Source: Isurus oxyrinchus (taxonomy: Eukaryota). Taken from it: a stretch of DNA of 64,000 bases. The stretch spans positions 558,001 through 622,000 of the forward strand of contig JANJGN010000052.1 in the NCBI GenBank assembly GCA_026770705.1, in the 5' to 3' direction. Under the pieces are notes generated by a model that saw nothing but the letters and a program-made list of their open reading frames with translations, did no database searches and had not been told where the DNA came from. Both the position numbers and the translations under genes were made by a program. Positions 4,031 through 49,662 of the stretch are shown one piece after another (position 1 is the first letter of the stretch; the number at the start of each line of letters is the position of its first letter).

Positions 4031-4039
4031 AAATTGTTG

Positions 4040-6991: not shown

Positions 6992-7022
<31 letters not shown>

Positions 7023-16966: not shown

Positions 16967-17775
16967 CTGTAAAAACAGCCATTAATTACTGCACTACAGG
17001 TTTACAATGATGCTCCGATGTATCTCGAGAAGCGATACACTCACTCAGTGTTTAAATACTCATTCTCGGGCAATGCTGACATTTATTGTCCATCCCTAGT
17101 TTCCCTTGAGAAGGTGGTGGGGGGTCTTCCTCCTGAACCACTGGTTTGTCCCAAACTGGGAGACCAGTTCAGAGGGCAGGTAAGAGTTAACCATGTTGGT
17201 GTTACAGACTGGAGTCACATCCACATCGAGACATGCTTCCCTCCCTAAAGGGTATGTAGTCTCTACACATGTAACAACCAACCTCACTGAAATAATCGAC
17301 TATCAGGTCATTATCACACGGTGGTTTGCGGGATCTTACTGTGCACAAATCAGTACCTGTGTTTCCTACATTACAACAGTGAGCTCACTTCGATAATGCT
17401 TCACTGGCTGTTGAATGTTTAGTAATTTCTAAGCAATTTATGAATACAATAGTTGCATTTCAACATGTAACATTTATATATAATATTTATCAATTAAAGA
17501 ATGAGAAGTTCAGCAATTAAAAGGGTTGTTCAGGACAGTTAGAGAGAGAAAGGTCGTCAAGTACGGAGATTGGAAACGAAGACCTGACAGCCTTGTCCTC
17601 ACAACCATTGAAGGAGAAACTGAGAGCAAAAACAGAAAGGGAGAGGAAAAATTGGATGTGTGGATAACGTGGACTGAGCGAGGATTGAAGAAAACTGGAT
17701 TAAAAACAACACGATCCCAATGGCTCCACGGAGACCACGGAGACAACAAACAAACAAATGTATCTCCACACTCAC

Positions 17776-18057
17776 GTTCCACAGTGATGGTTATGAACCC
17801 CTCCACTGCTCCATGTTCATTCTCTGCCACACACTGATTGTCTCCAGTGTCCCTGGATGTAACGTGAGGAATCACCAACCACAGCTCATTGTTGGAACTG
17901 GTTCTGTTCATTGGGACATTAAGATGTCGCCACATCAGGTTAGAAGCTGGGAAGCTCTCGACAGAGCAGATTATCACTGCAGAATTCCCCTCAATTATAT
18001 TGATTGATGAAGCGTAAATCATATTAAGCGAAGTAAATGAGAGATCCTGTGGTGCAT
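17776..18057 (-). CDS. Siglec C2-set Ig exon, tandem duplicate (DNQC variant)
   Basis: 282 nt, phase 1-1, canonical splice sites, about 1.1 kb repeat of the previous exon unit. Confidence 0.88.
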
Positions 18058-18872
18058 CTAAAAACAAATCAAGTGTTTAATGTGAGCAAACCTATTGCAC
18101 AGCAAGACTCCATGCATCATCTCTCTGTATCTGATGTCTGAATGCATTTCCAGGTAACTTCCCTCAGGATAACGTCTTATGCCACATTTTTAATGGACAC
18201 TGCCTATGTAAACTGTCACACTGCAGTTGCATTCTCCCACCAGTAGAGGTGTTGTCCATTTAGAATGAAAGAAGCTTGCTTTCACATCCTCAGGATTTCG
18301 CAAAGGGCTGGACAGGCAATGAATTGTATTTGATCGATGGAGCACTGATGGGTAAATCTACCATTCTCTGTTCAGGAGGTTGCTCATCCAATTCAGGGTC
18401 TTGTTGATCTGGAGTTTACCTTCCTTCAACACAGAATCGGAGCTGATACCGAGACTCCAGTGCAGCACTGAGAGAGGAGAGGGAACTCACGTGTGTGTAT
18501 CTGTGTGTTTGTGTTTCTGCACATGTGAGTGTGTTTGTGTGTGTATGCACACATGTGTCTGTGTGTGCGCATGCGCATGTGTCTGTGTGTCTAGGTCTGT
18601 CCATGAGTGAGAGTATGTGCATGTGTGTGTCTATGTGTGGGCATGAATGTGTGTGTGTGTTTGAGATGGGTGTGTATTTTCCTGTGTATGTGCTTCTATG
18701 TGTATGACTGTGTGTGGATAATTATGCATGTGTGNNNNNNNNNNNNNNNNNNNNNNNNNNNNNNNNNNNNNNNNNNNNNNNNNNNNNNNNNNNNNNNNNN
18801 NNNNNNNNNNNNNNNNNNNNNNNNNNNNNNNNNNNNNNNNNNNNNNNNNNNNNNNNNNNNNNNNTAACTCAC

Positions 18873-19154
18873 GTTCCACAGTGATGGTTATGAACCCCTC
18901 CACTGCTCCATGTTCATTCTCTGCCACACACTGATAGTCTCCAGTGTCCCTGGATGTAACGTGAGGAAACACCAACCACAGCTCATTGTTGGAACTTGTT
19001 CTGTTCATTGGGACATTAAGATGTCGCCACGTCAGGTTAGAAGCTGGGAAGCTCTCGACAGAGCAGATTATCACTGCAGAATTCCCCTCAATTATATTGA
19101 TCGATGAAGAGTTAATCATATCAAGAGAAGTAAATGTGAGATTCTGTGGAGCAT
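18873..19154 (-). CDS. Siglec C2-set Ig exon (DAPQNL...IICSVES...DYQC...ITVE)
   Basis: 282 nt, phase 1-1, canonical AG/GTGAGT, both Ig cysteines and core Trp present. Confidence 0.9.
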
Positions 19155-19847
19155 CTAAGAACAAATCAAGTGTTTAATGTGAGCAAGCAGCATGCACAGC
19201 AAGACTCCATGCATCATCTCTCTGTATCTGATGGCTGTATGCATTTCCAGATACCTTCCCTCCATATAACTTCCACTGTCAAATTTATAATGGGCACTGC
19301 CTATGTAAACAGTCAAACTACAGTTACATTCTCCCACCAGTAGAGGTGTTGTCCATCTAGAATGAAAGAAGCTTGCTTTCACATCCTCAGGATTTCGCAA
19401 AGGGCTGGACAGGCAATGAATTGTATTTGATCGATGGAGCACTGAGGGGTAAATCTACAATTCTCTGTTCAGGAGGTTGCTCATCCAATTCAGGGTCTTG
19501 TTGATCTGGAGTTTACCTTCCTTCAACACAGAATCGGAGCTGACACCGAGACTCCAGTGCAGCCCTGAGAGAGAAGAGGGACCTCACGCGTGTTTATGTG
19601 TATGTGTTTGTGTTTCTACATATGTGAGTATGTTTGTGTGAGTATGCATGCATGTGTCTGTGTGTGCATGTGTGTATGTGCGTGTGTCTTTGTGTATATT
19701 TCTGTGCATAAGTGAATGTGTGTACATGTGTATGTGTATGGTGTGTGCACGTGTGAGTGTGTGTGTGAGTTGAGTGTGTGTATGTTTCTGTGTAGGTTTT
19801 TGCACGTGTATGACTGTGTGTAAATGTGCATGTATGTGCCTACACAT

Positions 19848-19885
<38 letters not shown>

Positions 19886-22369
19886 ATGTGTGCATGTGGA
19901 TTGTCGCATCTTTATTATTAACGTTATTTAAAAATAGTGATCACACAAGCCTGGCTTCTAAGGAGATGAAACTGCAAACAATTTACAGTAAAGTGAAATG
20001 TACAGGAATAATCTATTTATTTAGAGTTGATGATATATAATTATACATGAGACATGTTGCTAATTTCAAACATCATCTGAAATATGGCAGGTCTGACAGA
20101 GCAGCATTCCCTCAGTGTCCACCCTCTGACAGTGCAGCACTCCCTCAGCATTGACGCTTTGAGAGTGCAGCACTCCTTCAGTATTGACCCTCTGGAAGTG
20201 CAGCACTCCCTCAGTGCTAACCCTCCAACAGTGCAGCACTCCCTCAGTACTGACCCTCTGACAGTGCAGCACTCCCTAAATACTGACCCTCTGACAGTTC
20301 AGCACTGCCTCAGTACTGACCCTTTGATAGAGCAGGGTTTCCCTCAGTACTGACCTCCTGACAGTGCAGCACTCCCTCAGTACTGACCCTCTGACAGTGC
20401 AGCACTCCCTCAATATTGACCCTCCAACAGTGCAGCACTCCGTCAGCACTCCCTCACTGGGGAGAGTCCATCTGGGTTTTGAGCTGAAACCTTGAGACGG
20501 TTTGAAAACCCCAACCTGCTGTCTTGGAGAGAGAGAGAGAGAGAGTGAGTGCGTGTGTGAGAAAGAGAGACAATGTGTGTGTGAGAGAGTGACAGTGCGT
20601 ATGTGTGCGAGAGAGAAGGATAGAGAGAAAGAGAAAATGTGTGAGAGAGCAAAAGAGAGGTAGAGTGTGTACGCATGAGAGAGTGAGGTAGCTGAATTGT
20701 GTGAGAGAGAGAGTGTGTGTGAGAGAAAGGGAATGTCTGTGTTAGAGAGAGAGCTTATGTGTGAGAGAGAAAGAAAGAGAGAGAATCTGNNNNNNNNNNN
20801 NNNNNNNNNNNNNNNNNNNNNNNNNNNNNNNNNNNNNNNNNNNNNNNNNNNNNNNNNNNNNNNNNNNNNNNNNNNNNNNNNNNNNNNNNNNNNNNNNNNN
20901 NNNNNNNNNNNNNNNNNNNNNNNNNNGAGAAGGAGTGTGCGAGAGAGGGTGTGTGTATTTGAGAGGGAGTGTGTGTATTTAAAAGAATGAACAAGAGAAA
21001 ATGTGTGTATGTGTGTGTGTGTGTGTCTGCGTGTGCATTCTGACTGAGCCGAGTTTACAGTTTCACACGTTGCTAGGGACCACTTTTCCGCCTCTCTGTC
21101 AGACTGTGTGTATCTGACAGCAGGTCAGGCAGGAATAGTCCAGAATGCGCTGTGGTTTTGTAGCATTGAAACAACGACAGGAACTAAATGAGTGCTGCAC
21201 CAAATAAAGACATGGAGTGACCACACCAAAAAACCACGTGACATCCCCAGTTTCACATCTCCCTCAAACACAGAAAAACTGGGTTAACACTGACCCTCCT
21301 CCCAGAGCCAGTTCACCTCGTGTCCGATGCAGTCAGGAGAGGAAGATCATCTCTCCTCCGATCCTGCTAAACTGAACATTTCCAGAATTAGATCAGCTCC
21401 CTGAAGTGTCTCCAGTTAGACATTCATCTGACAGGATTGACTCTACAACCCTGGGGACTCATTCTCCTGTAAGTAAAACACTTGCTGCTCCTGTCAAATC
21501 TCTTCTGTACAGCATGGTCTCTGGATGTCCCAGAACACTTTACAAGTGAGTTCACCCTTTTTTCGAAGTGTGGTTACTGTTGTAATGTAGGAAACGCAGC
21601 AGCCAATTAGCGCACAGCAAGCTCCCACAAACAGCAATGTGATCATCTGTTTTTGGTGATGTTGGTTGAGGGATAAATATTGGTCCCAGGACACCGGGGA
21701 GATCTCCCCCCTGCTCTTCCTCCAAATAGTGGCTGTGGGATCTTTCACACCCGCCCGAGAGGGCAGACGGGGGACTCGGTTTAGTGTCTAATATTGGACT
21801 AATCTCCAGGCGAGGTTGGCTGGATGGATTATTGACAAGGTCCATTCACCCTGTAAAGAGTTTCTCTGGTTTGAAATACCCGATCAAACATCGAGTTCTG
21901 TGTCTAAACCTTGTGTTGAAAAGACACCTTTCCAGCTCTTCACCTGCCATTAGCTTGTTGAGTCTTCACATGCTCCGTCTGTCCGTGACCAACCCCTCTT
22001 AGCTCATCCTTTCCTTGTCGTACATCGAGCTGTTCATCCTGACGGGTTCCATCCTTCCCAGTAACACTCCATCTCCGACATCAAACTAACTCCCAACACG
22101 TTGATGAATTGTATGGATTCCAGCGTCAGTTGGTTCTGTCTGAGGCTGTTTCTCTGATCGGGGACGGAGCTGTTCTGAATGGACATTGTGTTCAGTACTG
22201 ATCCTCCGACAGTGCAGCACTCCCTCAGTACTTACCCTCTGACAGTGCAGCACGCCCTCAGTACCGATCCTCTGACAGTGCAGCACTCCCTCACCACTCC
22301 CTCACTGGGGAGAATCTACCTGGGTTTTGAGCTGAAATCATGAGCAGGTCTTAAAACATTCTGTATCAG

Positions 22370-23581
22370 AGAGAGAGAGAGTGTCTGAGAGAGAGAGAGA
22401 GACAGAGAGACTGTGTGAGAGAGAAAAAGAGATAGAGAGTGTGCATGTGTGAGGGAGAGTGTTTGTATATGAGGGAGAGAGTGTGCATGTGAGAGTGTGT
22501 GAGAGAGAGTGTGTGGGAGAGAGCGTGTGTTTGTGACAGAGAGTGTGTGTGTGTGAGAGAGAGTGTCTGTGAGAGAGATTGTGTGGGAGAGAGAGTGTGT
22601 TTGTGACAGAGAGTGTGTGTGTGCGAGGGAGAGAAAGAGAGACAGCAGAAGATCGAGATGAAGAGAAATGTTAAATGTTTGAGAGAGAGAGAATGTGTGT
22701 GTCTGAGAGAGAGAGTGTGTGTGTGTGAGAGAGAGTGTGTGCTTGACAGAAAGAGAGATTGTGTTAGTTTTAGGGAAAGTGTGTGAGTGTGTGAGAGAGT
22801 GTTTGTGTCTGAGAGAGAGAGACAATGTATTTGAGGGAGGGAGACAGAGAGAATGTGTGTGTGAGAGAGAGAGAGATAGAGCAGAAGAGTGCGATAGAGA
22901 GAGATTGTGAGTGTCAGAGAGAGAATGTGTGTGTGTGTGAGAGAGAGATAGAGCAGAAGAGTGTGATAGAGAGAGATTGTGAGTGTTAGAGAGAGAATGT
23001 GTGTGTGTGAGTGAGAGAGATAGAGTAGAGGAGTGTGATAGAGAGAGATTGTGAGTGTTAGAGAGAGAATGTGTGTTTGTGAGAGAGAGAGAGCAGAAGA
23101 GTGCAATAGAGAGAGATTGTGTTTGTTAGAGAGAGAATGTGTGTGTGTGTGAGAGAGAGATAGAGCAGAAGAGTGTGATAGAGAGAGATTGTGAGTGTTA
23201 GAGAGAGAATGTGTGTGTGTGAGAGAGAGAGAGATAGATAGAGCAGAAGAGTGTGATAGAGAGAGATTGTGAGTGTTAGAAAGAGAATGTGTGTGTGAGA
23301 GAGAGAGAGATAGAGCAGAAGAGTGCGATAGAGAGAGATTGTGAGTGTTAGAGAGAGAATGTGTGTGTGAGAGAGAGAGAGATAGAGCAGAGGAGTGTGA
23401 TAGAGAGAGATTGTGAGTGTTAGAGAGAGAATGTGTGTGTGTGTGAGAGAGAGAGATAGAGCAGAGGAGTGTGATAGAGAGAGATTGTGTTTGTTAGAGA
23501 GAGAATGTGTGTGTGTGTGAGAGAGAGAGAGATAGAGCAGAGGAGTGTGATAGAGAGAGATTGTGTTTGTTAGAGAGAGAA

Positions 23582-23613
<32 letters not shown>

Positions 23614-25650
23614 CAGAAGAGTGTGATAGAGAGAGATTGTGAGTGTTAGAGAGAGAATGTGTGTGTGAGAGAGAGAGATAGAGCAGAAGAGTGTGATAGA
23701 GAGAGATTGTGAGTGTTAGAGAGAGAATGTGTGTGTGTGAGAGAGAGAGATAGAGCAGAAGAGTGCGATAGAGAGACATTGTGAGTGTTAGAGAGAGAAT
23801 GTGTGTGTGTGTGTGAGAGAGAGATAGAGCAGAAGAGTGTGATAGAGAGAGATTGTGAGTGTTAGAGAGAGAATGTGTGTGAGAGAGAGAGAGAGATAGA
23901 GCAGAAGAGTGTGATAGAGAGAGATTGTGAGTGTTAGAGAGAGAATGTGTGTGTGAGAGAGAGAGATAGAGCAGAAGAGTGCGATAGAGAGAGATTGTGA
24001 GTGTTAGAGAGAGAATGTGTGTGTGAGAGAGAGAGAGATAGAGCAGAAGAGTGTGATAGAGAGAGATTGTGAGTGTTAGAGAGAGAATGTGTGTGTGTGA
24101 GAGAGAGAGAGATAGAGCAGAGGAGTGTGATAGAGAGAGATTGTGAGTGTTAGAGAGAGAATGTATGTTTGTGAGAGAGAGAGAGAGCAGAAGAGTGCGA
24201 TAGAGAGAGATTGTGAGTGTTAGAGAGAGAATGTGTGTGTGTGTGAGAGAGATAGAGCAGAAGAGTGTGATAGAGAGAGATTGTGAGTGTTAGAGAGAGA
24301 ATGTGTGTGTGAGAGAGAGAGAGATAGAGCAGAAGAGTGTGATAGAGAGAGATTGTGAGTGTTAGAGAGAGAATGTGTGTGTGTGAGAGAGAGAGATAGA
24401 GCAGAAGAGTGCGATAGAGAGAGATTGTGAGTGTTAGAGAGAGAATGTGTGTGTGTGTGAGAGAGAGATAGAGCAGAGGAGTGTGATAGAGAGAGATTGT
24501 GAGTGTTAGAAAGAGAATGTGTGTGTGTGAGAGAGAGAGATCGAGCAGAAGAGTGCGATAGAGAGAGATTGTGAGTGTTAGAGAGAGGATGTGTGTGTGT
24601 GTGAGAGAGATAGAGCAGAAGAGTGTGATAGAGAGAGATTGTGAGTGTTAGAGAGAGAAGGTGTGTGTGTGAGAGAGAGAGATAGAGCAGAAGAGTGTGA
24701 TAGAGAGAGATTGTGAGTGTTAGAGAGAGAAGGTGTGTGTGTGAGAGAGAGAGATAGAGCAGAAGAGTGCGATAGAGAGAGATTGTGAGTGTTAGAGAGA
24801 GAATGTGTGTGTGAGAGAGAGAGAGATAGAGCAGAAGAGTGCGATAGATAGAGATTGTGAGTGTTAGAGAGAGAATGTGTGTGTGTGAGAGAGAGAGATA
24901 GAGCAGAAGAGTGCGATAGAGAGAGATTGTGAGTGTTAGAGAGAGAATGTGTGTGTGTGTGAGAGAGAGATAGAGCAGAGGAGTGTGATAGAGAGAGATT
25001 GTGAGTGTTAGAAAGAGAATGTGTGTGTGTGAGAGAGAGAGATCGAGCAGAAGAGTGCGATAGAGAGAGATTGTGAGTGTTAGAGAGAGGATGTGTGTGT
25101 GTGTGAGAGAGATCGAGCAGAAGAGTGCGATAGAGAGAGATTGTGAGTGTTAGAGAGAGGATGTGTGTGTGTGTGAGAGAGATAGAGCAGAAGAGTGTGA
25201 TAGAGAGAGATTGTGAGTGTTAGAGAGAGAAGGTGTGTGTGTGAGAGAGAGAGATAGAGCAGAAGAGTGCGATAGAGAGAGATTGTGAGTGTTAGAGAGA
25301 GAATGTGTGTGTGAGAGAGAGAGAGATAGAGCAGAAGAGTGCGATAGATAGAGATTGTGAGTGTTGGAGAGAGAATGTGTGTGAGAGAGAGAGAGAGACA
25401 GAGCAGAAGATTGTGATCGAGAGAGATTGTGAGTGTTAGAGAGAGAATGTGTGAGTGTGAGAGAGAGAGAGATAGAGCAGAAGAGTGTGATAGAGAGAGA
25501 TTGTGAGTGTTAGAGAGAGAATGTGTGTGTGTGAGAGAGAGAGATAGAGCAGAAGAGTGCGATAGAGAGAGATTGTGAGTGTTAGAGAGAGAATGTGTGT
25601 GTGTGAGAGAGAGAGATAGAGCAGAAGAGTGCGATAGATAGAGATTGTGA
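22370..25650. repeat. Same satellite in reverse orientation, about twice as long
   Basis: gatagagcagaagagtgtgatagagagagattgtgagtgttagagagagaat(gt)n(ga)n units. Confidence 0.95.
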
Positions 25651-25915
25651 GGACTAAACTCACTGAGAGAAAAAGCTGGACACCCAGCACAGGGAGTGAG
25701 GGAACAATGAATTTTTGCCGTGTTTGGTGAATCGGTTTGCGATGTCCCTTCTCAATCTCTCCTTCCTTGTCTTGACATTAGTTTATTCCCTGGGGCTGTT
25801 TAATTCCCTGAAAGGTGCCATTTAAACACAAGTTGTTGTTTGAGGAAGAAACGCTGGGGACAATTTATGAAAAAGTCTCTGTCTTTATCATTTCCATTTA
25901 GATGAGGAACTGAAG

Positions 25916-27083
25916 ATGGGAGAGGTCGGTCTGATATTGATCTTCATCAGCTTGCTGCAAGGTACAAATTCATTACTGATCGGAACTCAGGGAATTGGAT
26001 TCTTTCCTGGAGTGAGGAAGTGAACATTTAATTTTAGAGAACAGGGTTAGTGATCACACAGAGAGTGAGTGATTAGCGAGTCAGAGAATATAGCAAAAGC
26101 AAAAGCCTCATACGGACTCGAAACACCAACTCTGTTTCTCTCTCCACAGATGCTGTCAGACCTGCTGAGTTTTTCCAGCATTTTCTGTTTGTGCATCAGA
26201 GAGCTTGTTTCAATAGGAATGACAGTGCATTTATATTGCACCTTTAATGCAGTAAAACATCCTTATTGCTTCACAGGATTCCCCCACAAGGGGTAACATC
26301 CCCTCAGCATCCACCCTGTCAAACCCCCCACCACCTCAGAATCTTATATGTTTCAATAAGATCACCTCTCATTCTTCTAAACTCCAATGGATACAGGGCC
26401 CAACCTGCTCAACATTTCCTCACAGGACAAACCCCCTTCATCCCAGGAATCAGCCCAGTGAACCTCCTCTGAGCTGCCTCCAATGCAGAGTCTATCCCTC
26501 CCTAAGTAAGGAGACCAGAACTGTACACACTGCTCCTGATACAATCTCACCAACGCCCTGTGCAGTTGTAGCAAGACTTCCCTCCTTTTATACTCCATCC
26601 CTTTGCAATAAAGGCCAACATTCCACTTGCCTTCCTCATTCTGTGCTGTTCCTGAATGCTGACTTTCTGTGATTCATGTACAAGGACACCCAGATCCCTC
26701 TGTACCGCATTCTGCTGCCTCTCTCCATTGAAGTAATATTCTGCTTTTTGATGTCCTGTCTCTTCCCTTGTTGCCTTTCAGGAGTGACGTCAGAGGGATG
26801 GTCTATGAAGGCGCTGCCTCGGAGGGCCATCAGCAGCTCTTGTGTGGTTATTCCGTGTAGCTTTGACTTTCCTTCCCACTCTTACACAGCACTGCACGGA
26901 GCTTGGTATATATATTGGTATAGATGGAAATATACCATCACATACACCAAAGATCCCAATTATGGGGTGGCCACATTCGTGGGACGTGCTAAAATCATCG
27001 GCGACTTGGAAGGGAAGAATTGTTCGGTGAGGATTGACAGTCTCAGAGCTGAAGACAGGGACGTGTATTACACCCAATTCTAA
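25916..27083 (+). pseudogene. Siglec/CD22-like pseudogene: leader exon (25916-25961) plus V exon from 26782, truncated at about 27070 by fusion to Gypsy gag
   Basis: MGEVGLILIFISLLQ G|gtac. V exon reads SSCVVIPCSFDFP...GRAKIIGDLEGKNCSVRIDSLRAEDRDVYY, then a stop; no donor and no downstream Ig exons. Confidence 0.85.
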
Positions 27084-27470
27084 ATCTTTTCACCAATTAG
27101 TCGTCCTCATGAAGATGTGTTTTCAGCTGAAGCCGTGGGTAATAATGCAGAGGTTTAAGTTTAACTCCAGAGTAAGGGCCCCGGGTGAGTCCATCGCAAC
27201 CTATACAGTGAAGTGGAAGCAGGTGACTGAGCACTAAGACCTCGGAGACACACTCAATGACATGTTGCGGGGCCGATTGGTTTGTGTCGTTCACCCCAAC
27301 GCCATTCAGAGCCGTTTACTCGCAGAAGCCGACATCGATTTGAAGCGCACCATGGAAATAGCGCCAGGCATGGAAAGTGCTGGAAGAGACTGGCGGGATT
27401 TACAGGATGTACAACATGGCACCAGTCCTCAGCTGGGACAGGAACCAACCACCGGGCGTGAGGCTCAAAC

Positions 27471-27503
<33 letters not shown>

Positions 27504-28430
27504 CCGCCAAGCGAGAGACAGTCTCTGCCGCTCCTGAAACTAAAAGGCTTCGTGGGAGTATTTCAGCAGCAACTCCGAAGTTGGCCTGTTCTCGATGTGG
27601 GGGGGAGTGATCTCGTACCGGACACCTGCAGGTCCAAGGGGGCAGAATGCCATCACTGCCACAAGAAAGGGGCGGGTAATAAAGCAATGCAGGGTGAAAT
27701 CGAGACAGCCCATCAGACAGTGCACCAACATGATGGAAGTGAATAATATCACAGAGCCTGAAGCTGCTGATACTGATGTCTATTCCCTGTCCAATGTCAC
27801 AGTGGTAAAAACTGAACCTATAACCATCACAACCCAAGTGAATGGGCAGCCACTAGTAATGGGGCAGATACGGGAGCCTCAGACACAGTGGTGGAAGAGC
27901 CCACATTTAAACAGCTAAATGAAGGAACCCAGACGCTGAATTTAGAGCCAACAATGGATCAGCTGAAGACACACACTGGAGAATCCATACAGGGAAAGGA
28001 CCTCATCCCAGTACCTGTGTCCTACAGGCAGCAGACAGCCCAGCTTCCAGTGATCATAGCGACAGGTGAGGGCCCTAGTCTTCTGGGCCGAGACTGGTTC
28101 CAGAAAACCAAGCTCAGCTGCTCTGAAATGTTTCACTGGAGGAGTTGCTGAGTTGCTGGGGGAATATGAGAGTGTATCTCGGAATGAGTTTGAAGAATTG
28201 AAGCATCCTCACAGGCTGCAAGTGTCCCTCAGGTCAGAGTTGGTTCCACTGGAAAATCCTGAAGAGAAAGAAAGCGAATTCTGTGCCGCTCTGAGCAAAC
28301 TGAAGAAACAGTTGGCAGGGAAGACCCAACCATGTCCAATGTTCCAGGAGGAAGGCAAGAGATACAAGGAAGAGACTGAAGAGCTGAAGATTCAGCTGAA
28401 TGAAACCAAAGAGGCAGTTACAGTATCACA
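27070..28430 (+). mobile_element. Degenerate Gypsy-like gag-protease fragment (inverted copy)
   Basis: Mirror of 4040-5394. Confidence 0.85.
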
Positions 28431-29451
28431 ACAAGTTTACAGTGCAGAAGGAGGCCATTCAGCCCCTTGAGCCTGTTACACAGGAACAGGAGGAGGCCCA
28501 TTCGGCCCCCTCAAGCCTGTTACACAGGAACAGGAGGAGGCCATTCAGTCCCCTCGAGCCTGTTACACAGAAACAGGAGGAGGCCATTCAGCCCCCTCGA
28601 GACTGTTACACAGGAACAGGAGAAGGCCATTCAGCCCCCTCAAGACTGTTACACAGAAACAGGAGGAGGCCATTCTGCCACTTATGTCCGTTATACAGGA
28701 ACAGGAGGAGGCCATTCAGCCACTGAAGCCCATTACACAGGAACAGGAGGAGGCCATTCAGCCCCTTGTAGGGTGTGGTGGTGTGTGTCAGCTTCACCTG
28801 CGACTTCTGAGCCGTCTGAATCACTCCCACTCCCTGGGTTCTAGACCTTGGACTTATTCGGGGCTTGTCACAAAGTGCAGCAGACAACTGGTTTTGGTGC
28901 AAGACAAAAACTGAGTTTACTGAAGTCACAAATGAACTTATAACATTAGGATGACACTGAGATTATACAGACTTACAAAGTACACTGAGTTAAGAATGGG
29001 GAACAACCGGCATAACGAGGGAGAATCACGCTACTAATGCCCTTACCCTTGTCCCACCCCCAAACCCTAACTAAATTCCACTAGGAGAGGTCAGGGGTCA
29101 CGCTCACCAACCCAGGGTTCCTTGACAGTTGGAAATTTTGAGAACCCTTCAAGAGATGGGGAGGGTTACAGGGGCTGGAGGAGGTTACAGAGATAGGGAG
29201 GGTTGTAGGGGCTGGAGGAGGTTACAGAGATAAGGAGTGTTGTAGGGGCTGGAGGAGGTTACAAATTGTAAATCAGTTCCCCCTCGAGGCCCCTTGTCCA
29301 AAATAAAAGCAACGCACACAATTTGTAAAATAGTAAGTGTAGCAATGAGAGGAGTAAGGGGTTAGGGGGCATGCGCTTCACCTGATTTGCCGACATAAGA
29401 ACCAGCCCCTCTGTTTTTGCTATGTTGTGTTGCATCAATAAGAACACATAT

Positions 29452-29860
29452 TTGCACAAGGTGAAGGGCGTTGCGGAGGGACTGATAGTTCTCGGCGCCA
29501 GACAGTCAATGTCCCAGTGACCTTACTGCTGGTTTGAAAACAAAGAAAACTGCGGATGCTGGAAATCTAAAACAAAAACAGAATTACCTGGAAAAACTCA
29601 GTAGGTCTGGCAGCATCGGCGGAGAAGAAAAGAGTTGACGTTCTGTCGAAGGGTCATGAGGACTCGAAACGTCAACTCTTTTCTTCTCCGCCGATGCTGC
29701 CAGACCTACTGAGTTTTTCCAGGTAATTCTGTTTTTGTTACCTTACTGCTGGTCCCAGGCCAGTGGGACAGGGAACATCGACACTGCAATATCCAGAAAT
29801 GGGTGTGATACCACACAGCTACCCACCCGCGGCTGTCCCCTTCAAGTGTTTCAGGTATAA
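29452..29860 (+). promoter_or_regulatory. Hepcidin proximal promoter: C/EBP-like TTGCACAA (29452), BMP-RE GGCGCC plus Smad AGAC (29494-29503), TATAA (29856-29860)
   Basis: Motifs read directly upstream of exon 1. GGCGCC is the known BMP-responsive element of vertebrate HAMP promoters. Confidence 0.65.
29534..29739. mobile_element. Penelope-like palindromic insertion in the hepcidin promoter, 14-bp TSD
   Basis: Inverted arms around ctgtcgaagggtcatgaggactcgaaac. ACCTTACTGCTGGT duplicated at 29520-29533 and 29740-29753. Confidence 0.75.
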
Positions 29861-29932
29861 GAGCAGGAAGCTCCTCTAGTTACAAACCAAAGCATCAAAG
29901 CAGAGCCAGAAGATCAGAAGAGACAGGCAGAG

Positions 29933-30025
29933 ATGGGAAGCTCCCAGATGAAATGGCGACTTGTCTTGTTCACTCTGACTTTGCTGCTCTCCCTGCAGCT
30001 GAGTCACTTCTTCTCCTTGTCGAGG
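29933..30025 (+). CDS. HAMP: Hepcidin-like gene, exon 1 (signal peptide MGSSQMKWRLVLFTLTLLLSLQLSHFFSLSR)
   Basis: ATG at 29933 (alternative in-frame ATG at 29948), hydrophobic signal peptide, 93 nt, phase-0 donor AGG|gtaagc. TATA box at 29856. Confidence 0.88.
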
Positions 30026-30224
30026 GTAAGCTAAGAGATGTCCCTCTGGGTGAGGTGTTTCTTGCACATGACTCTACGTCTACCACCCAGATAGACTGGT
30101 CACTTCCGCAGTTTGATATTATTATGTTCGTGCCTTTAATATTGTCGCCCTCTATGAATTTAACATCATTTCCTTCTGTCGTTTCCCTTGAAATTCTCAT
30201 TCTTGTTTTCAATCCCTCCTCAGC

Positions 30225-31010
30225 CACTCCCTATCTCTGTAACCTCCACCAGGCCTTACAACCCTCCCTATCTCTGTAAACTCCTCCAGCCCCTACAACC
30301 CTCCCTATCTCTGTAACCTCCTCCAGCCGCTACAACCCTCCCTATATCTGTAACCTCCTCCAGCCCCTACAACCCTCCCTATCTCTGTAACTTCCTCCAG
30401 CCCCTACAACTGTCCCTATCTCTGTTACCTCCTCCAGCCCCTACAACACTCCCTATCTCTGTAACCTCCTCCAGCCCCTACAACCCTACCTATCTCTGTA
30501 ACCTCCCCCAGGCCCCACAACCCTCATGATCACTGTAACCTCCTCTAGACCCTACAACCCTCCCTATCTCTGTAACCTCCTCCAGACCCTACAACCCTCC
30601 CTATCTCTGTAACCTCCTCCAGGCCCCACGACCCTCAGAATCACTGTCACCTCCTCCAGCCCCTACAATGCTCATGAACTCTATAACCTCCTCTCCACAC
30701 TATAACTCTCCCTATCTCTGTAACCTACTGTGGCCCCTACAACAGTATTTATTTTGGTAACCTCCTCCAGCCTCTACAACCCTCCCTACCTCTGTAACCT
30801 CCTCCAGCCCCCACAACCCCCCATCTCTTTAACCTCCTACAGCCCCTACTCACCTCCCTATCTCTGTAACCTCCTACAGCCCCTACAACCTTCCCTATCT
30901 CTGTAACCTCCTACAGCCTCTAGAACCCTCCCTATCTCTGTTACCTCCTACAGCCTCTACAACCCTCCCTATCTCTGTAACCTCCTCAAGCCGGAACAAC
31001 CCTCCCTAAA
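30225..31010. repeat. 37-bp tandem repeat (ccctacaaccctccctatctctgtaacctcctccagc) in hepcidin intron 1; also about 2140-2380, 29155-29262, 53700-54140
   Basis: About 20 units; the same unit sits inside the L2-like LINE at 53-55 kb. Confidence 0.9.
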
Positions 31011-31788
31011 TCTCTGGTCTGAGTCTCACTCCAGGGAATTCAGTCCCATAACGTCGGTCAACACTCCGTGCTGAGGGAGTGCTGCACTGTCAGAGGGTCA
31101 GTAGTGTGGAAGTGTTGCACTATTGGAGGGACAGTACTGAGTGAGTGCTATACTGTCGGAGGTCAGTACTGAGGAAGTGCTGCATTGTTACAGGGTCAGT
31201 ACTGTGGAAGTGTTGCACTGTCGGAGGTCAGTACTGAGGGACTGCTGCTGTGTCGAAGGGTTAGTACTGAAATAGAGCTGCACTGACGGAGGGACAGTAC
31301 TGAGGGAGCGCAGCACTATCGAAGGGTTAATACTAAGGGAGTGCTGCAGTGTCAAAGGGTTAGTACTGAGGGAGCGCAACAATGTTGAATGAGACATTAA
31401 ACCGAGTCCCCCGTCTGCCCTCTCGGGCGGGTGTGAAAGATCCCACAGCCACTATTTGGAGGAAGAGCAGGGGGTGCTCTCCCCGGTGTCCTGGGACCAA
31501 TATTTATCCCTCAACCAACATCACCAAAAACAGATGATCTAGGCCATGATCACATTTCTATTTGTGGGATCTTGCTGTGCACAAATCAGCTGCCACATTT
31601 CCTACAGTGTGAGTGCACTTCAAAAACATCCTTCAGTGGCTGTGAAATGCTTTGGGATGTGGTGAAAGGCGTTAGAGAAATGCAAGTCTGTCCTCCTCCC
31701 TCTCTCTCTCCTGTACCTCTCTCTCTCTCTCTCCCTCTCCCTCAATCCTCCTCTCACTTTCTCCCTGATAAATTCTTTCTTTTTGCAG

Positions 31789-31845
31789 GTTGACACTGCT
31801 TTAGGTTCTTCGACGATTGAGAAATCTGTGGATTCCCCGGACACG
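31789..31845 (+). CDS. HAMP: Hepcidin-like gene, exon 2 (pro-region VDTALGSSTIEKSVDSPDT)
   Basis: Strong polypyrimidine acceptor ttctttctttttgcag|, 57 nt, phase 0-0, donor |gtaggt. Size and phase fit the short hepcidin exon 2. Confidence 0.82.
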
Positions 31846-33113
31846 GTAGGTGGAAATTCATTCCTTATTTTAAGGTTTCTCCCTGCTCGTTTCTTCCACA
31901 GAAAGTTTTCTGATTTCAAGCTGATTTCAGTGGCAGTCTGTCTCGGTTATACTCAGGAGGCAGGTTTGAAATCGAGCCCCCCCCCCCCTCCTTTTTTTGC
32001 AAAGCTGGGAAGAGGCAATTCCAAGGAAGTGAACATATCCCCACAGGAATTTTAAATGTAACCCACGCCGGGAATAGTGAGAGGGAGACTGATCCAGCCT
32101 GGGAGTGGGTTAAAGAGAGGCTGGGAGTCGAGAGTCGGAGAGAGGGATGGAATGGGGGAGGGAGGGATTGGAAGAGAGAGACAGAGAGTGGGACGGGGAG
32201 GGGTGAAAGGGAAAGAACATAGGTGGGAGAGAGTGACAGAGGGAGAAATTAAAGAAGAGATGCAGAGTGAGGGAAAGTGAAAAGGGAAGAGAGATTGTCC
32301 AAGAGAGAGAAATTAACAGGAAAGGGAGAGTTACAGAGTGAGCGAAAGGTACAAAAATAGTGTGAGAGAGAGGGAGAGATACAGAGTGGGAGAAGGAGAC
32401 AGGGGAGAGAGAGAGGGAGAGAGACAGGAAAAGGGAGAGAGGAGAGAAAGATTGGGAGAGAGGGCAATTGAGCGGAAGAGTAGGAGAGAGAGAGACAGGG
32501 AGAGGAGGAGTGGATGAGAGGAAGAGAGAGAGAGATATGGAGCAGGAGAACACCTCCTCCGGTCCCGATGTTCCTCCAAAATCTCTGAAATTCCTGCATC
32601 TCCCGGGTCCCCCTGATTCCCATCGCTCCACCATTGGTGGCCGTGCCTTCAGCTGCCTGGGGCCCTGAGCTCCGGAATACCCTCCCTTAACCTCTCTGCC
32701 TCTCTCTCTCTCTCCTTTAAGATGCTCCTTAAAAACTGACATCTTTGACCAAGCTTTTGGTCACCTAATATCTCCATATGTGACTCAGTGTTAGACTTCT
32801 CTCTGATTTACGCTCCGGTAATGTGGGCTGGGACATTTTGCAATGTCAGAGGCGCTGTGTAAATGCAAGTTGTGAGTGTTATGTGGAAGGGAGACCCCAG
32901 GCGGCAGTCAGTGCCAGAGACTGGAGTCATTGTGCGCAGACCGTATCTAATCTCTCCGAATGCACAATCGGTTTGACTGTCAGCCAAAGCACTTTTGATA
33001 TTTGATCCTTCTAACTGTTTATAACCAGGCCTACATCATACACCGAGAGGCTGGTTAATCAACAGACACCTTAGAGGATCGAGTGAAAGACAAAGAGGAC
33101 TTGCATTTCTCTA

Positions 33114-33262
33114 TAAAAACAAAGAAAACTGCGGATGCTGGAAATCCAAAACAAAAACAGAATTACCTGAAAAAACTCAGCAGGTCTGGCAGCATCGGCG
33201 GAGAAGAAAAGAGTTGACGTTTCGAGTCCTCAGAAGGGTCATGAGGACTCGAAACGTCAACT
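33114..33262. mobile_element. Penelope-like insertion in hepcidin intron 2, 14-bp TSD
   Basis: CTTGCATTTCTCTA duplicated at 33100-33113 and 33263-33276. Confidence 0.72.
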
Positions 33263-34237
33263 CTTGCATTTCTCTAGCGCCTTCCAACACATCAGGACGT
33301 CCCAAACTGTTTCGCAGACAATCAAGTGCTTTCTTTCTTTCATGTGAGGTCACTGATGTACTGTGGGAAAAGAATCAGCCATTGGCGCACAGTAAGATCC
33401 CACAGACAGCAGCATGATAATGACCAGCGCGCTCCCAGTACTTGCACTGCAAGTGTCAGTTCAGGGTGTCTGCTCGATTCTCTGCAACTCTCAGCTCTGA
33501 ATTAAAAGGACCACCAGGCGTAATTGAGAAATTACCGAGCTGTCGGAGGGTCAGTACCGGCGGGGGGGCAGGACAGTCGGAGGGTCAGTACTGAGGGGGT
33601 GCTGCATTGTCAGACGGTCAGTCTTGGAGTGCTGCACTGTCAGAGGGTCAGTACCGGCGGGGGACTGCACAGTCGGAGGGTCAGTACTGAGGGGGTGCTG
33701 CATTGTCAGACGGTCAGTACTGAGGGAGTGCTGCACAGTCGGAGGGTCAGTACTGAGGGGGTGCTGCACTGTTGAAGGCGCTGTCTTTCAGATGAGATGT
33801 TAAACTGAGACAACATCTGCCCTCTCAGATGGATGTAGAGGATTCCATGGCCACAATTTAAATGAAGTGCGTCATGAGTTGGGGGTATGTGTGGAGGGGG
33901 TGGTGCGGGGTGGATGGGATGCAGTTATGTCTGCTTTCCTGGGGCAAACATTTATCCCTCAACTGACATTGGTAAAAAACTGAAAATCGGGGCCATTATC
34001 ACATTTCTGTTTGTGGGATCTTGCTGTGCGTGAATTGCCTGCTGCGTTTCCTACATTACAGCGGTGAGCTCACTTCAGAAAAAGTCCTTCCTTCAGCTGT
34101 GGAACACTTTGGGCCATCCTGAGGAGGGGAAAGGCGCTATAGAAATGCGCCATCCTCCTTCCAATGACGCGCTTGATTGAAATGATGCCTTCTTTCTTTC
34201 CGGAATGTTCTCACCTATTGTCCTCCTGCTTTTCCAG

Positions 34238-34354
34238 GGCTCCTTGCTGCAGCGCCAGAAGAGAATGGGCAGACAGCAGCTCTGCAGATTCTGCTGTAAC
34301 TGCTGTAATTGGAGAGAACCAAATGAGACTTGTGGTCTCTGCTGTAGATATTAG
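34238..34354 (+). CDS. HAMP: Hepcidin-like gene, exon 3 (GSLLQRQKR|MGRQQLCRFCCNCCNWREPNETCGLCCRY*)
   Basis: Acceptor ctgcttttccag|, furin site RQKR, 8-Cys hepcidin pattern C-x2-CC-x-CC-xn-C-x2-CC, TAG at 34352-34354. Confidence 0.95.
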   Translation, partial: GSLLQRQKRMGRQQLCRFCCNCCNWREPNETCGLCCRY

Positions 34355-36829
34355 ACCCTGGCCTCATTCACGCAAGGTCATCCTGCACCATGCCACAGCC
34401 TCTCCCCTCCTTATCTACTGCTTAGCAATCTACTTAACACAGGCCCTGTTCAGTAATTCCAACTGAAACTTTACCTGCGTTTTACAGCAGGGAAAGAAGC
34501 CATTCGGCCCATCTGTTCCATGCTGGAGTTTCTGCTCCACACGAGTCTCCGCCCACCCCTTCTCCATCTCACCCCATCACCATATCCTTCTATTCATTTC
34601 TCCCTCGTGTGTTTATCCAGCTTCCCCTTAAATACATCGACACTATTCACCTCACGTGACTGTGTTTGTGTCTGTCTTTATGAGCGTGTGTGTGTGACTG
34701 TCAATATGTGTGTGTCAATGTGAATGTGTGTGATTGTGTCAGCGTGTGTGTGTGTATGTGTGACTGTCAGTGCGTGTCAATGTGAATGTGTGTGATTGTG
34801 TCAGCGTGTGTCTGTGTGTGTGTGTGTGTGGGTGTGTGTGACTGTGTCAGTGTGTGTCAATGTGAATGAGTGAGTGTGTCAGTGTGTCTGTGTGGGTGTG
34901 TGTGACTGTGTCAGTGTGTGTCAATGTGAATGAGTGAGTGTGTCAGTGTGTCTGTGTGGGTGTGGGTGTGTGAGTGTGCAAGTGAATGTGTGAGGAATCT
35001 TATGACTAAGTCATTTGAATGGATGTTACTGGGGTTAATGATAGTTAAAATTCAGAGAGATGTAAAGCGGGCTCCTGATTTTGCTGCTTTATGCTCCCGG
35101 GCACAGATTCACCCCGACAATGTGTTCATGATTCACCATTATCTTGTCGGGACTTTAATTGTAAAGATTATGATTTGTGAAAAAAAATGAATAAACAACT
35201 TTTGTCTTCACAAAGTGTCTGACTTGGTATTTCAGGCTACTTGTCTCTCCCTCACCCTCCCCCCCCCACCATGCCCCCCACACCAGGGAACAATTGTCCC
35301 CCGTTCCTCTGAAGTTCTGGGTAAAGATCAGCTTTGTTCAATGCAAGCTGTTCCGACATCGAGAACGTTGTTACAAATATCTCACAAAGGGCACACGCCA
35401 TGATAGCCCACTTTCAACAGATTTTACCAGTTGACCAGGTTGAAAACCTTTTCATAAACCACAACGTAGGTGTTCAATTCTTGCTGCTGTTTGCTTAATG
35501 TTCTCATAACTGCTATAACCTCTCTAGTTCCACTACATAACAACACCAACATAAATAAACAGAAGCAGGAGTAGGCCTTTTGGCCCCCCAAGCCAGCTTG
35601 TCCATTCAATTTGAACCTGGCTCCTGCTGAAAGTTATTTAAGTTGAAGCGATAAAGCCATCAGGTGCAGGGATTAAAATGTAAGCAAAGGAAAAATAATA
35701 CTTAGACATGAGATTTAAAATCAGTTTCTGTGAAGAATCATAGTGAGGCCATTGCTCTGGATTCCTTCTTTCCAGAGTGAAGGGTTTAAAACTAGGAGTC
35801 ACATTCAGCAGCTGCGTTGTCTTCTCTAGTTGACTATTTGGAGGTTGCCTGTAGATGTGAATCAGCAGGACAGCAGCTTTGGGGAGTGAGTGAAGGTCCC
35901 TTTTATTTACAGGATCTGCCATAGGGTGTGCAGGAATATTCCTGCTGAATTCTCCATCCTTGCATTCATGAAGGGTTTGAAACTGGAAGTCATATTCAGC
36001 AGCTGCAATGGCCTCTGTAGCCAACTGTCTGGAGGTTGCCTGTACAGGTGGACTCAGCAGGTCAACAGCTTTGTAGGGCGGGGGACACGGGTAGTGAAGG
36101 TCCCTTTTCTTTAAAGGTTCTGCCAGTGCAACACTTGATGATCCTGGGTCAAAATGATGTATCACCCTCCCCAACAGCACTGTGGATGTGCCCTATGGAG
36201 GTTCCTTGGCTTCAACGAGCAGCCTACCAGCTCTACTCTCAATTCCTCTTCGCACTTGCTTCCTTCCTCCTCTGGTCTTTACTTTGTTATAGTGTTAGTG
36301 TCCGCTCTGCCTTTTTTGTTGCTTTCCCAATTCTTCCCACCAACTCTCTCTGGCTTGATCCTTCTCTGTGCTCATCTCATTGGTTTGAGTTTCTATCCGT
36401 TCATTGACCTGGTGTAATCTGAAACTGGTGCAATCAGGTAGGGTTGGGGGGGTTGGCGCTGGCCGTGGGTGGTGATACACGGCTACCTTTTTACCAAAAT
36501 TCTTTCACGGGATGTGGACAGCGTTTGTTACCTGTTTCTGACTGACCCCTTGAGAAGGGGGTGCTGAGCTGCCTTTTCGAAGTGCTGCAGTTCACCTGGT
36601 TTGACTGGTCTGTGGCGGGTTTTGATATAACTCAGTGGCTTGCTCGGCCATTTCAGGGGCCAGTTAAGAGTCAACCACATTGCTGTGGGTCAGGAGTCAC
36701 ACGTAGGCCAGAATGGGTAAGGACGGCAGGTTTCCTTCCCCAAAGGGCATTAGTGACCCAGATGGGTTTTTGCAACAATTGGCGTTAGTTTCATGGTCAC
36801 CATTACTGAGACTAGCTTCGCATTCCAGA

Positions 36830-43964: not shown

Positions 43965-44692
43965 CTAACAGACAGAGAATGGATCCTTTTAGAGAAATAT
44001 AACGTGAAGCATCAGTTCAAATAGAAATCACAGTCCCACAAGAAAAAGCACTTTTACAAGGATGATATCAGATCTGAGAGGTTACAATGATTAGGAGAGA
44101 ATTTCCTGCTTTGAGACTTTGGTGTTTCTGTCTCTCAGTTTAACACACGTTCACTCCGAGACACTTGAACTGATAATAGTGGGTGAGGGTGGTGGAGCAG
44201 ACCAGAGTTTGGAGTGCACTAACCCATCAGTCCCTCAGCGATCTAGGCCATTTTTTACTTTGCAATTTGTGGGAGCTTGCTGTGCGCAAATTGGTTGCTG
44301 TGTTTCCCACATTACAATAGTAACTAAAATTCAGGAATCAGCTCATTGGCTGTGAAGTGATTTGGTCCATGCTGAGGTGGTGAAAAGTGCTACAGAATTG
44401 TGAATCTTTCTTCTGTCGCTAAGTCAGACTTCGAGACAGGATTAGAGAGATCGATGGGAGTGGATAACCTGATAACATTGATGGACACAGTCAATACATT
44501 TAATCATTGATATTAAAGTGAGTATTAGAGGTTGCTTTAGGACTGAACTGGAAGCTATCACCAGGTTACTGAGAATCAGACAGTGTGTTATAATAAACTG
44601 TGTTTTGTGTTAATATGTAAACGTCACAGTTTGTGTTGTTTCCCATTGAGTGTTGAATGTGAATTGTTGAGTAATTATAACACAGCACTTAC

Positions 44693-45058
44693 CAGAAACG
44701 TGAACCTGGGTTACAGGGTAATAGTTATGGCTCGGACCATTGTCAAATTCTATTCTGAAAAAATAAGGTCCTGCATCTTCCCATGTGATGTTGTTTATAA
44801 TCAGGGAACAGTCGCCATCTTTCAGGTCTCCAGACAGCCGGGTCCGATGGTGGAACCGTGGTAACTCGTGACTGTGATCCTTGGAGTGAAAGGCTATAGA
44901 CGATGTTCTCCATTCCTCATTATTAAGCCAGACTCCACGTCGCGGTTGGTTTTCCAGACATGATGGATAACTATAATGACATGGAATCTGTACACAGGAA
45001 CCTTCCTGCGCTGTCACCTCTCGTGGAGTGTCACCTTTCCACTCTTGTGAGGGTTCAG
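44693..45058 (-). CDS. Siglec V-set Ig exon V5
   Basis: 366 nt, phase 1-1, open frame, DAGPYFFR. Confidence 0.92.
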
Positions 45059-46997
45059 CTGCGGAGAGAAATCTCAATATTTAACTCTGAATGGTTTGTG
45101 GATCCACTGAACCCGATATTTACAGATGAGGCTGAATTGGGGGGATGGTCAATACTGAGGAGAATGGCAATAAATTATATTGTCAGGAAGAATAGAAAAA
45201 CAGGATATAATTTAAATGGTGACAGGCTGCAGTATGCAGTACAGAGGGATCTGGGTGTCCTGGTACATGAATCACAGAAAGTCAGCATTCAGGAACAACA
45301 CGGAATGAGGAAGGCAAGTGGAATGTTGGCCTTTATTGCAAAGGGATGGAGTATAAAAGGAGGGAAGTCTTGCAACAGCTACACAGGGCGTTAGTGAGAT
45401 TGTAACAGGATCATTGTGTACAGGCAGTTCAGAGAAGCTTCACTGGGCTGATTCCTGGGATTAAAGGGTTTGTCCTGTGAGGAAATGTTGAGCAGGTTGG
45501 GCCTGTATCCATTGGAGTTTAGAAGAATGAGGGGTGACCTTATTGAAACATATCCGATTCCGAGGGGGCTTGACAGGGTGGATGCTGGGAGGATGTTTCC
45601 CCCTCGTGGGGGAATCTAGAACCAGGGAGCACAGTTTCGGAATGAGGGCTCTCCCCCATTTAAGACTGAGATGAGGAGGAATTTCCTCTCTCAGAGGGGC
45701 GCTAGCCTGTGGAATTCTCTTCCCCAGAGAGCAGTGGAGGCTGGGCCATTGAATAGACTCAAGGCTGAGTGAGGCAGGTTTTTGATCGACAAGAGAGTCA
45801 AGGGTTTGGGGGACAGGCAGGAAAATGGAGTTAAGGCCACAACCAGATCAGTGAGAGCAGGCTCGAGGGGCCGAATGGCCTGCTCCTGTCCCTATTTCTT
45901 ATGTTCCTACATTCTTACCTTCTTAAAATATTAAAGCTGCAGAATAAACATGCAAGTGACTGACCCGCTCGACCCACTTTCCATCTGGGGGTCCCATGGG
46001 GAGGACCCTTCCTGAGCCAGATCCACCAGCCAACATGGTCTGGATCTGAGCACAGGAGACACGGGGGGGAGGGACTAACAGGCTCCTTGTGACAGGCCCC
46101 GTCTGTCCAATGGCTGGCTTTCAGCTGCCAAGGCCAGAGTTGTCCTTGCTAAAACCGGCTCAGGACAGGCCAGGACCCCTGTGCAGACCCCCTCCAGCGC
46201 TGCAGCCTCTGTACAAACCCCTCATGCGCTTGTGGAGAGACACAAACAAGGCTGCTCATTACCGAGGAGAATCCCCTCTACAGACTAAGGTGCTGACTCA
46301 TCACCCTAAACTCGGCAAATGAGGAGGCTCTCGCTCGGTATCGGGGCTTGGCATTCGCTCAATAAAAATAATCAAATGACATTTTGGTCAGAAATCTAAG
46401 GAGGTTGTACATTCCCTCAAAAATAAGACTCGATCTGGGGTCGAGAGTCAAAGGGCAACAACTTATATTTTCACAACAACTTTAACATGACAAATCACCT
46501 CAAGGTGCTACACAGGAGCGTCATAAAACAAAGTATGTCACCCAGACACATGTGGAGATATTAGCGACAGCTGACCAGAAGAGGTCGGTGTTATGGAGAG
46601 ACAGAGAGAAAGAGACAGAGAGAGAGAGAGAGAGAGGGAGAGGAAGAGGGAGAGGGAGAGGTTTAGGGTGGGAAGTCTAGGGTGGTGAAAGGCGCTGTAG
46701 AAATGTAAATCTTTCTTCTGTCGATATGTCAGACTTCAAGACAGGATTTGAGAGATTGATGGGAGTGGATAAACTGATAACATTGATAGACACAGTCAAC
46801 ACATTTAATCATTGATATTAAAGTGAGTATTAGACATTGCTTTAGGACTGAACTGGAAGCTATCACCAGGTTATTGAGAATCAGACAGTGTGTTATAATA
46901 AACTGTGTTTTGTGTTAATATGTAAACGTCACAGTTTGTGTTAATTCCCATTGAGTGTTGAATGTGAATTGTTGAGTAATTATAACACAGCACTTAC

Positions 46998-47363
46998 CAG
47001 AAACGTGAACCTGGGTTACAGGGTAATAGTTATGGCTCGGACCATTGTCAAATTCTATTCTGAAAAAATAAGGTCCTGCATCTTCCCATGTGATGTTGTT
47101 TATAATCAGGGAACAGTCGCCATCTTTCAGGTCTCCAGACAGCCGGGTCCGATGGTGGAACCGTGGTAACTCGTGACTGTGATCCTTGGAGTGAAAGGCT
47201 ATAGACGATGTTCTCCATTCCTCATTATTAAGCCAGACTCCACGTCGCGGTTGGTTTTCCAGACATGATGGATAACTATAATGACATGGAATCTGTACAC
47301 AGGAACCTTCCTGCACTGTCACCTCTCGTGGAGTGTCACCTTTCCACTCTTGTGAGGGTTCAG
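46998..47363 (-). CDS. Siglec V-set Ig exon V4
   Basis: 366 nt, phase 1-1, open frame, DAGPYFFR. Confidence 0.9.
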
Positions 47364-49296: not shown

Positions 49297-49662
49297 CAGA
49301 AACGTGAACCTGGGTTACAGGGTAATAGTTATGGCTCGGACCATTGTCAAATTCTATTCTGAAAAAATAAGGTCCTGCATCTTCCCATGTGATGTTGTTT
49401 ATAATCAGGGAACAGTCGCCATCTTTCAGGTCTCCAGACAGCCGGGTCCAATGGTGGAACCGTGGTAACTCGTGACTGTGATCCTTGGAGTGAAAGGCTA
49501 TAGACGATGTTCTCCATTCCTCATTATTAAGCCAGACTCCACGTCGCGGTTGGTTTTCCAGACATGATGGATAACTATAATGACATGGAATCTGTACACA
49601 GGAACCTTCCTGCACTGTCACCTCTCGTGGAGTGTCACCTTTCCACTCTTGTGAGGGTTCAG
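49297..49662 (-). CDS. Siglec V-set Ig exon V3
   Basis: 366 nt, phase 1-1, open frame, DAGPYFFR. Confidence 0.9.

Follow-up and report, generated by a model that had tools for sequence, protein, structure and literature searches.

Introduction

Vertebrates use hepcidin as their master iron hormone, and the peptide is antimicrobial as well; teleosts have divided the two roles, with one type-1 gene on one side and several type-2 genes on the other. A 64,000-nt stretch of the genome of the shark Isurus oxyrinchus (assembly GCA_026770705.1, contig JANJGN010000052.1, positions 558,001–622,000 of the forward strand; hereafter the window, numbered from its first letter) carries a hepcidin-type gene at positions 29933–34354 whose predicted mature peptide contains no histidine and has an unusually long loop in its hairpin. 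Which of the two roles does such a gene serve, control of ferroportin or host defence, and is it the only hepcidin of the animal? The reading that we hold to be fairly probable is that this is a duplicated, strongly transcribed gene of the HAMP/Siglec locus, encoding a type-2-like hepcidin with an enlarged hairpin loop that serves defence and not iron regulation. Below we derive this reading from the gene model, the mature peptide, the transcript contigs and the surrounding duplication, and weigh it against its rivals.

Results

An intact three-exon gene of the hepcidin family

Translation of the window yields a three-exon gene at 29933–34354 on the + strand with 31 + 19 + 38 codons and a stop, together encoding 88 aa. 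An 88-aa three-exon prepropeptide with an RQKR site had been proposed in an earlier note on this DNA, and both the translation and the GT–AG introns reproduce it at exactly these positions. The gene is composed of the following parts.

29933–30025, + strand: exon 1, coding part, 31 aa, with the donor GTAAGC at 30026
Within exon 1: predicted signal peptide, an n-region with K and R followed by the hydrophobic core LVLFTLTLLLSL (Kyte–Doolittle peak 2.5, residues 10–21)
30026–31788, + strand: intron 1, 1763 nt, phase 0, GTAAGC...TTTTTGCAG
31789–31845, + strand: exon 2, 19 aa of the pro-region, last codon ACG (Thr50)
31846–34237, + strand: intron 2, 2392 nt, phase 0, GTAGGT...TTTTCCAG
34238–34354, + strand: exon 3, coding part and stop codon, holding the end of the pro-region and the entire mature peptide

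The three exons translate to MGSSQMKWRLVLFTLTLLLSLQLSHFFSLSR, VDTALGSSTIEKSVDSPDT and GSLLQRQKRMGRQQLCRFCCNCCNWREPNETCGLCCRY, the last followed by the stop codon. The start codon stands in the context GAGATGG, with a purine at −3 and G at +4, and the combination of a basic n-region and a hydrophobic core in exon 1 points to a signal peptide. The frame is intact throughout, and splice sites, convertase site and all eight cysteines are kept, which rules out a pseudogene. A search of the 64-kb window for a second hepcidin or for exon relics found none, leaving one hepcidin-type exon set only. Approximately 1 kb of intron 1 is occupied by a 37-nt minisatellite (30085–31113, repeat family D11).

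Family searches were conducted exon by exon. The Pfam Hepcidin profile (PF06446), named in the earlier note as a check of its assignment, is matched by exon 3 alone with 31.6 bits against a curated cut-off of 27 (E 2e-7). In this match 33 residues are aligned on 29 profile columns, corresponding to a net insertion of 4 residues relative to the family consensus. By its sequence, the gene at 29933–34354 is a member of the hepcidin family. The sole match of a PDB sequence search is the bass hepcidin 1S6W (E 0.26); its aligned segment, CRFCCNCC----PNmSGCGVCCRF, contains a 4-column gap that reflects the longer turn of the window peptide. A word search with the exon-3 open reading frame (ORF) extended into the intron, for which 88-aa relatives fall within the length range, returned no candidate. 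HMMER with exon 3 against 1.84 billion representatives returned only P0001, a repetitive 577-aa junk ORF that is not a hepcidin; this blank is weak, as ordinary hepcidins cannot reach E 0.001 with a 38-aa query. Neither a search of the ESM Atlas nor an Rfam scan of the whole window gave a usable match or a match, respectively.

A mature peptide with a His-less N-terminus and an eight-residue loop

Exon 3 reads GSLLQRQKR up to the cleavage site, followed by the mature sequence MGRQQLCRFCCNCCNWREPNETCGLCCRY, with the following elements.

34253–34264, + strand: RQKR proprotein-convertase (furin-type) site, expected to be cleaved from the known processing of the family
34262–34273, + strand: RMGR, a second minimal convertase motif that overlaps the end of RQKR
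34265–34351, + strand: predicted mature peptide, 29 aa, 8 Cys, net charge +2, no His
34307–34330, + strand: loop NWREPNET, 8 residues, between Cys5 and Cys6
34322–34330, + strand: NET sequon in the loop, mature residues 20–22

Cleavage at RMGR, if used, would give a 26-aa QQLC... form that starts three residues before the first Cys. The cysteines are spaced 2,0,1,0,8,2,0, which is the family pattern C-x2-CC-x-CC-xn-C-x2-CC with n = 8. Type-1 teleost hepcidins are defined by an ‘iron regulatory sequence’, Q-S/I-H-L/I-S/A-L, at the N-terminus (PMC8502971). Compared with this motif, the N-terminus MGRQQL retains only the final Leu, and Gly, Arg, Gln and Gln occupy mature positions 2–5 where the iron-regulatory motif has Ser-His-Leu-Ser. 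An N-terminal X-X-His copper/nickel site is described for human hepcidin in PMC7232333; such a metal site is absent from the mature peptide.

The earlier note had described a 29-aa mature peptide with eight cysteines, an N-terminus free of His and a NET sequon in the loop, and all three descriptions hold on translation (MGRQQL; sequon at the residues listed above). It had further called the loop an acidic one of 8 residues. The length stands, and the acidity is only mild (2 Glu and 1 Arg, net −1). The loop of human hepcidin has 4 residues, about the value that the note had given for iron-regulatory hepcidins. In the documented sea bass peptides, Hamp1 (QSHLSLCRWCCNCCRGNKGCGFCCKF) and Hamp2 (HSSPGGCRFCCNCCPNMSGCGVCCRF), the loop is 5 residues long (PMC5665920).

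Abundant, exactly spliced transcript contigs

Sequencing runs were searched as Logan contigs, and four of them (X1, X5, X10 and X12) were mapped on positions 29700–34700. The best holder is X1, from organism A. The joint 30025|31789 is found in 11 X1 contigs and the joint 31845|34238 in 9, each with removal of a GT..AG intron; these are precisely the two junctions that the earlier note had put forward for checking. Five further X1 contigs stop just 5′ of 34238, carrying the final letters of exon 2, GGATTCCCCGGACAC, before 34237. The summed word depth in the bins of exons 1, 2 and 3 amounts to ~301,000, 166,000 and 540,000, and exon depths of 166,000–770,000 compare with ~700–1,500 in unique intron bins, a more than 100-fold difference. 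Given the exact intron removal and this contrast in depth, X1 is sensibly read as RNA. The exons are covered neither in X12 (organism A, another study) nor in X10 (organism C). In X5 (organism B), exon 1 is represented by a contig that differs at 5 of 94 nt, and the exon 2–3 junction by one contig, indicating that a relative expresses a related gene.

Two further transcribed features were delineated.

34355–34540, + strand: 3′ untranslated region (UTR), unique part, X1 word depth ~750,000 over 34376–34542
33029–33183, + strand: minor cassette exon in intron 2, 155 nt, frame-shifting, donor CAG|GTCTGG

The 3′ UTR may continue as far as the first AATAAA, at 35190, in which case it would include a SINE-like piece and a GT-rich repeat. 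The cassette exon is joined to its neighbours in X1 by 31845→33029 (depth 844) and 33183→34238 (depth 510), one contig each, and represents exonisation of a transposable element, its cryptic donor being contributed by one of the copies of the hairpin element described below.

A sister transcript with the regulatory motif

One X1 contig matches the window up to 34267 (...RQKR-Met) and then diverges into AGCCACCTCTCGATCTGCATGTACTGCTGT, which reads SHLSICMYCC in frame. The (M)SHLSI-C of this sister transcript fits the type-1 motif, which the window peptide does not. The sister and window transcripts have the pro-region in common, and ~12 of the next 33 nucleotides differ; the divergence appears to be centred on the mature peptide, the usual pattern in families of defence peptides. 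Since an SHLSICMYCC transcript exists in X1, the His-less long-loop form is a paralogue and not the animal’s only hepcidin. The proposal of a paralog in the earlier note is thereby substantiated, both by the SHLS-type transcript in the same sample and by the duplicated block around the gene. Type-2 teleost hepcidins lack the regulatory motif, are diverse, exist in multiple copies and are mainly antimicrobial (PMC8502971); the window gene likewise lacks the motif, lies in a duplicated block and has a motif-bearing, type-1-like sister transcript in the same sample.

Duplicated block and Siglec-type neighbours

The gene is located at the inner end of the right arm of an inverted duplication, with Siglec-type exons as neighbours.

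22191–29483: inverted segmental duplication, right arm (left arm 1–8961; blastn, inverted repeats I1 and I2)
44610–56491, − strand: tandem V-set/Ig_CD22 (Siglec-type) exons (Pfam V-set 46–51 bits, Ig_CD22 37–44 bits)
17510–18064 and 18631–19161, − strand: Ig C2-type exons (Ig_3/I-set), upstream, in the spacer between the arms by the N runs

In blastn, positions 1–216 match the reverse complement of 29483–29268 with 99% identity, and 3243–8961 match 29136–22191 in inverted orientation with 91–93%. The ATG of the hepcidin-type gene is 449–450 nt from the mirror point, and by the mirror arrangement one would expect a sister gene in head-to-head orientation immediately to the left of the window. 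The divergence of the arms (1–9%, plus indels) speaks for genuine paralogy and against a haplotype artefact. Four N runs fall within the spacer that separates the arms.

The V-set/Ig_CD22 exons, of which four were scored, follow each other at intervals of ~2.3 kb and encode Siglec-type ligand-binding domains. The two Ig C2-type exons at 17510–19161 are 96% identical to each other. Human HAMP adjoins MAG and CD22 on 19q13. With Siglec-type neighbours as for HAMP in mammals, the region looks like the conserved HAMP locus.

Both arms carry an array of ~72-nt periodic repeats longer than 3 kb (22350–25650 and 6770–8720). The left arm is broken by a ~3-kb insertion (217–3242), within which an array related to the 37-nt minisatellite of intron 1 is found in direct orientation (2080–2481).

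A hairpin element in the promoter and the contribution of the window copy

Two features were recognized upstream of the ATG.

29534–29739, + strand: near-perfect hairpin (MITE-like) element, 206 nt, in the promoter of the hepcidin-type gene
29856–29861, + strand: TATA-like box TATAAG, ~75 nt 5′ of the ATG

From the position of the TATA-like box, transcription would start near 29885–29890. The hairpin element is bounded by the 14-nt direct repeat ACCTTACTGCTGGT (29520–29533 and 29740–29753) and has a DNA fold of −97.6 kcal/mol (z −22.7). It is one of four copies in the window, the others starting at 33125 and 40572 and lying at 55311 (− strand). In each of the four mapped runs, contigs with the element are very numerous. 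A consensus scan of the upstream region found a sole BMP-RE-like GGCGCC at 29494, where 0.15 are expected by chance, and the hairpin element lies between this site and the TATA box. The same kind of scan, by consensus only, found neither TTCNNNGAA nor an NF-kB consensus in the 800 nt upstream; consensus matches or their absence do not in themselves indicate whether the promoter responds to iron/BMP or IL-6/STAT3.

The transcripts in X1 are not uniform. A junction contig with ATG (Met50) at the end of exon 2, joining 31843→34237 with a T between, has a depth of 13,928, compared with 2,475 for the exact ACG (Thr50) junction of the window copy, which is ~5.6 times shallower and a minority form. 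Intron contigs of X1 differ from the window at 1–6 positions per 145–360 nt, and the variant 34607 G>A takes 60% of the X1 depth. The two forms of residue 50 and these other variants point to the expression of two or more copies or alleles. The Thr50 form of the window copy is present in X1 and is not dominant.

These variants suit a reading in which the window copy is a redundant, weakly used and drifting duplicate, with the abundant RNA coming from sister copies; so does the insertion of a 206-nt hairpin element ~115 nt 5′ of the TATA box. The reading is compatible with the others weighed here. Against it, the frame, the splice sites, the convertase site and the eight cysteines are intact, and the exact Thr50 junction occurs in nine X1 contigs. 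Contig depth, moreover, is a poor measure, as rare variants are dropped, and X1 may stem from another individual. We consider a drifting duplicate unlikely.

Discussion

Host defence or iron control

In the reading that we favour, a type-2-like defence hepcidin, the signal peptide would direct secretion of the prepropeptide, and a furin-type convertase would cut after RQKR, or after RMGR. The eight cysteines would then form the four-disulfide beta-hairpin of the family, with a turn of eight residues instead of four or five, and the ferroportin-directed N-terminus and the X-X-His metal site would have been lost. With the Ser-His-Leu-Ser core replaced and no X-X-His site, ferroportin is probably not the target of the peptide, which would instead serve in host defence, like teleost Hamp2, or take another non-hormonal role.

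Several observations weigh against this. A charge of only +2 and a slightly acidic loop are weak for a membrane-active peptide. Leu6, Cys7 and Phe9 match positions of human hepcidin that, according to mutagenesis, aid ferroportin binding, and with these residues kept, residual binding of ferroportin is possible. Expression at this very high, liver-like level would be in keeping with a hormone, too. That X1 is RNA is itself a guess and its tissue is not recorded, and with ~1–2% intron differences and the deeper Met50 form, expression in X1 is not assignable to the window copy alone. A single-sequence AlphaFold2 prediction of exon 3 gave two helices (pLDDT 71, pTM 0.38) in place of a hairpin-type fold; for a disulfide-rich peptide modelled without an alignment, this result is uninformative.

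In a rival reading, the long-loop peptide has remained an iron hormone: it would bind ferroportin and either share the control of iron with the SHLS-type copy or have taken over this role. The peptide has six residues ahead of Cys1, the number found in hormone-type hepcidins, and it retains Leu6, Cys7 and Phe9; X1 is extremely rich in transcript contigs; and the promoter holds one BMP-RE-like GGCGCC at 29494. The receptor side would also permit it, since Cys326 of ferroportin, which binds hepcidin, first appears in cartilaginous fish (PMC8235187). What makes this reading improbable in our view is the N-terminus, where His3 is changed to Arg and the hydrophobic residue 4 to Gln and the X-X-His site is missing, as well as the SHLS-type sister in the same sample, which could carry the hormone role. 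In addition, the multi-copy state marks the non-hormone type-2 genes in teleosts (PMC8502971), and the lone GGCGCC, with its chance expectation of 0.15, now stands further from the TATA box because of the inserted element.

A new target is very unlikely. Here the enlarged, possibly N-glycosylated loop would recognise a non-classical partner, for example the second ferroportin paralogue without Cys326 that is present in some cartilaginous fishes (PMC8235187). The net 4 residues above the Pfam profile and the NET sequon in the loop would accord with such a partner; the idea is purely speculative, and the sequon lies so near the C-terminus (9 residues) that glycosylation would be inefficient. Likewise very improbable is that hepcidins with a long loop and no His evolved in cartilaginous fishes as a ligand class of their own, whose loop has a partner other than classical ferroportin; if true, such a class together with the second ferroportin would amount to two hormone–receptor pairs for iron handling.

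If a type-2-like defence hepcidin is the correct reading, a shark hepcidin without the motif beside an SHLS sister would represent the same division of labour as in teleosts, reached independently and near the base of jawed vertebrates. A doubled hairpin loop that carries a glycosylation sequon would then be a structural novelty. The window peptide is small enough for synthesis and direct testing on ferroportin and bacteria.

Comparison with known hepcidins

In the literature searched, we found no paper on elasmobranch hepcidin genes; the only trace is the detection of hepcidin in nurse shark plasma, and the supplement of that paper contains no hepcidin sequence. Comparison was made with human and teleost hepcidins.

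With human hepcidin-25 and teleost Hamp1, the window gene shares (i) the three-exon prepropeptide organization, (ii) the RX(K/R)R site, (iii) the 8-Cys pattern, (iv) six residues before Cys1 and (v) the adjacent Siglec genes of MAG/CD22 type. It differs from the iron-regulatory hepcidins in having MGRQQL instead of DTHFPI or QSHLSL, with no His3, in a loop of 8 residues versus 5 in sea bass Hamp1 and 4 in human hepcidin, and in its multi-copy state.

The closer resemblance in the core is to type-2 peptides. The CRFCCNCC core is identical in the hybrid striped bass hepcidin 1S6W and in sea bass Hamp2, which extends the 1S6W form at the N-terminus, and the CG(L/V)CCR(Y/F) tail is near-identical. 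As in teleost type 2, the QSHLS-type motif is absent and the gene belongs to a duplicated family alongside a motif-bearing, type-1-like sister. In sea bass, ferroportin is reported to be regulated by Hamp1 and not by Hamp2 (PMC5665920). Unlike teleost type-2 peptides, the window peptide has the 8-residue NWREPNET with its sequon versus the 5-residue PNMSG, and a lower charge, and its gene lies beside Siglec genes. That the long-loop form and the SHLS sister have their pro-region in common within one animal speaks for an independent origin, so that the split between the two most likely represents a lineage-specific duplication and not orthology with teleost hamp2.

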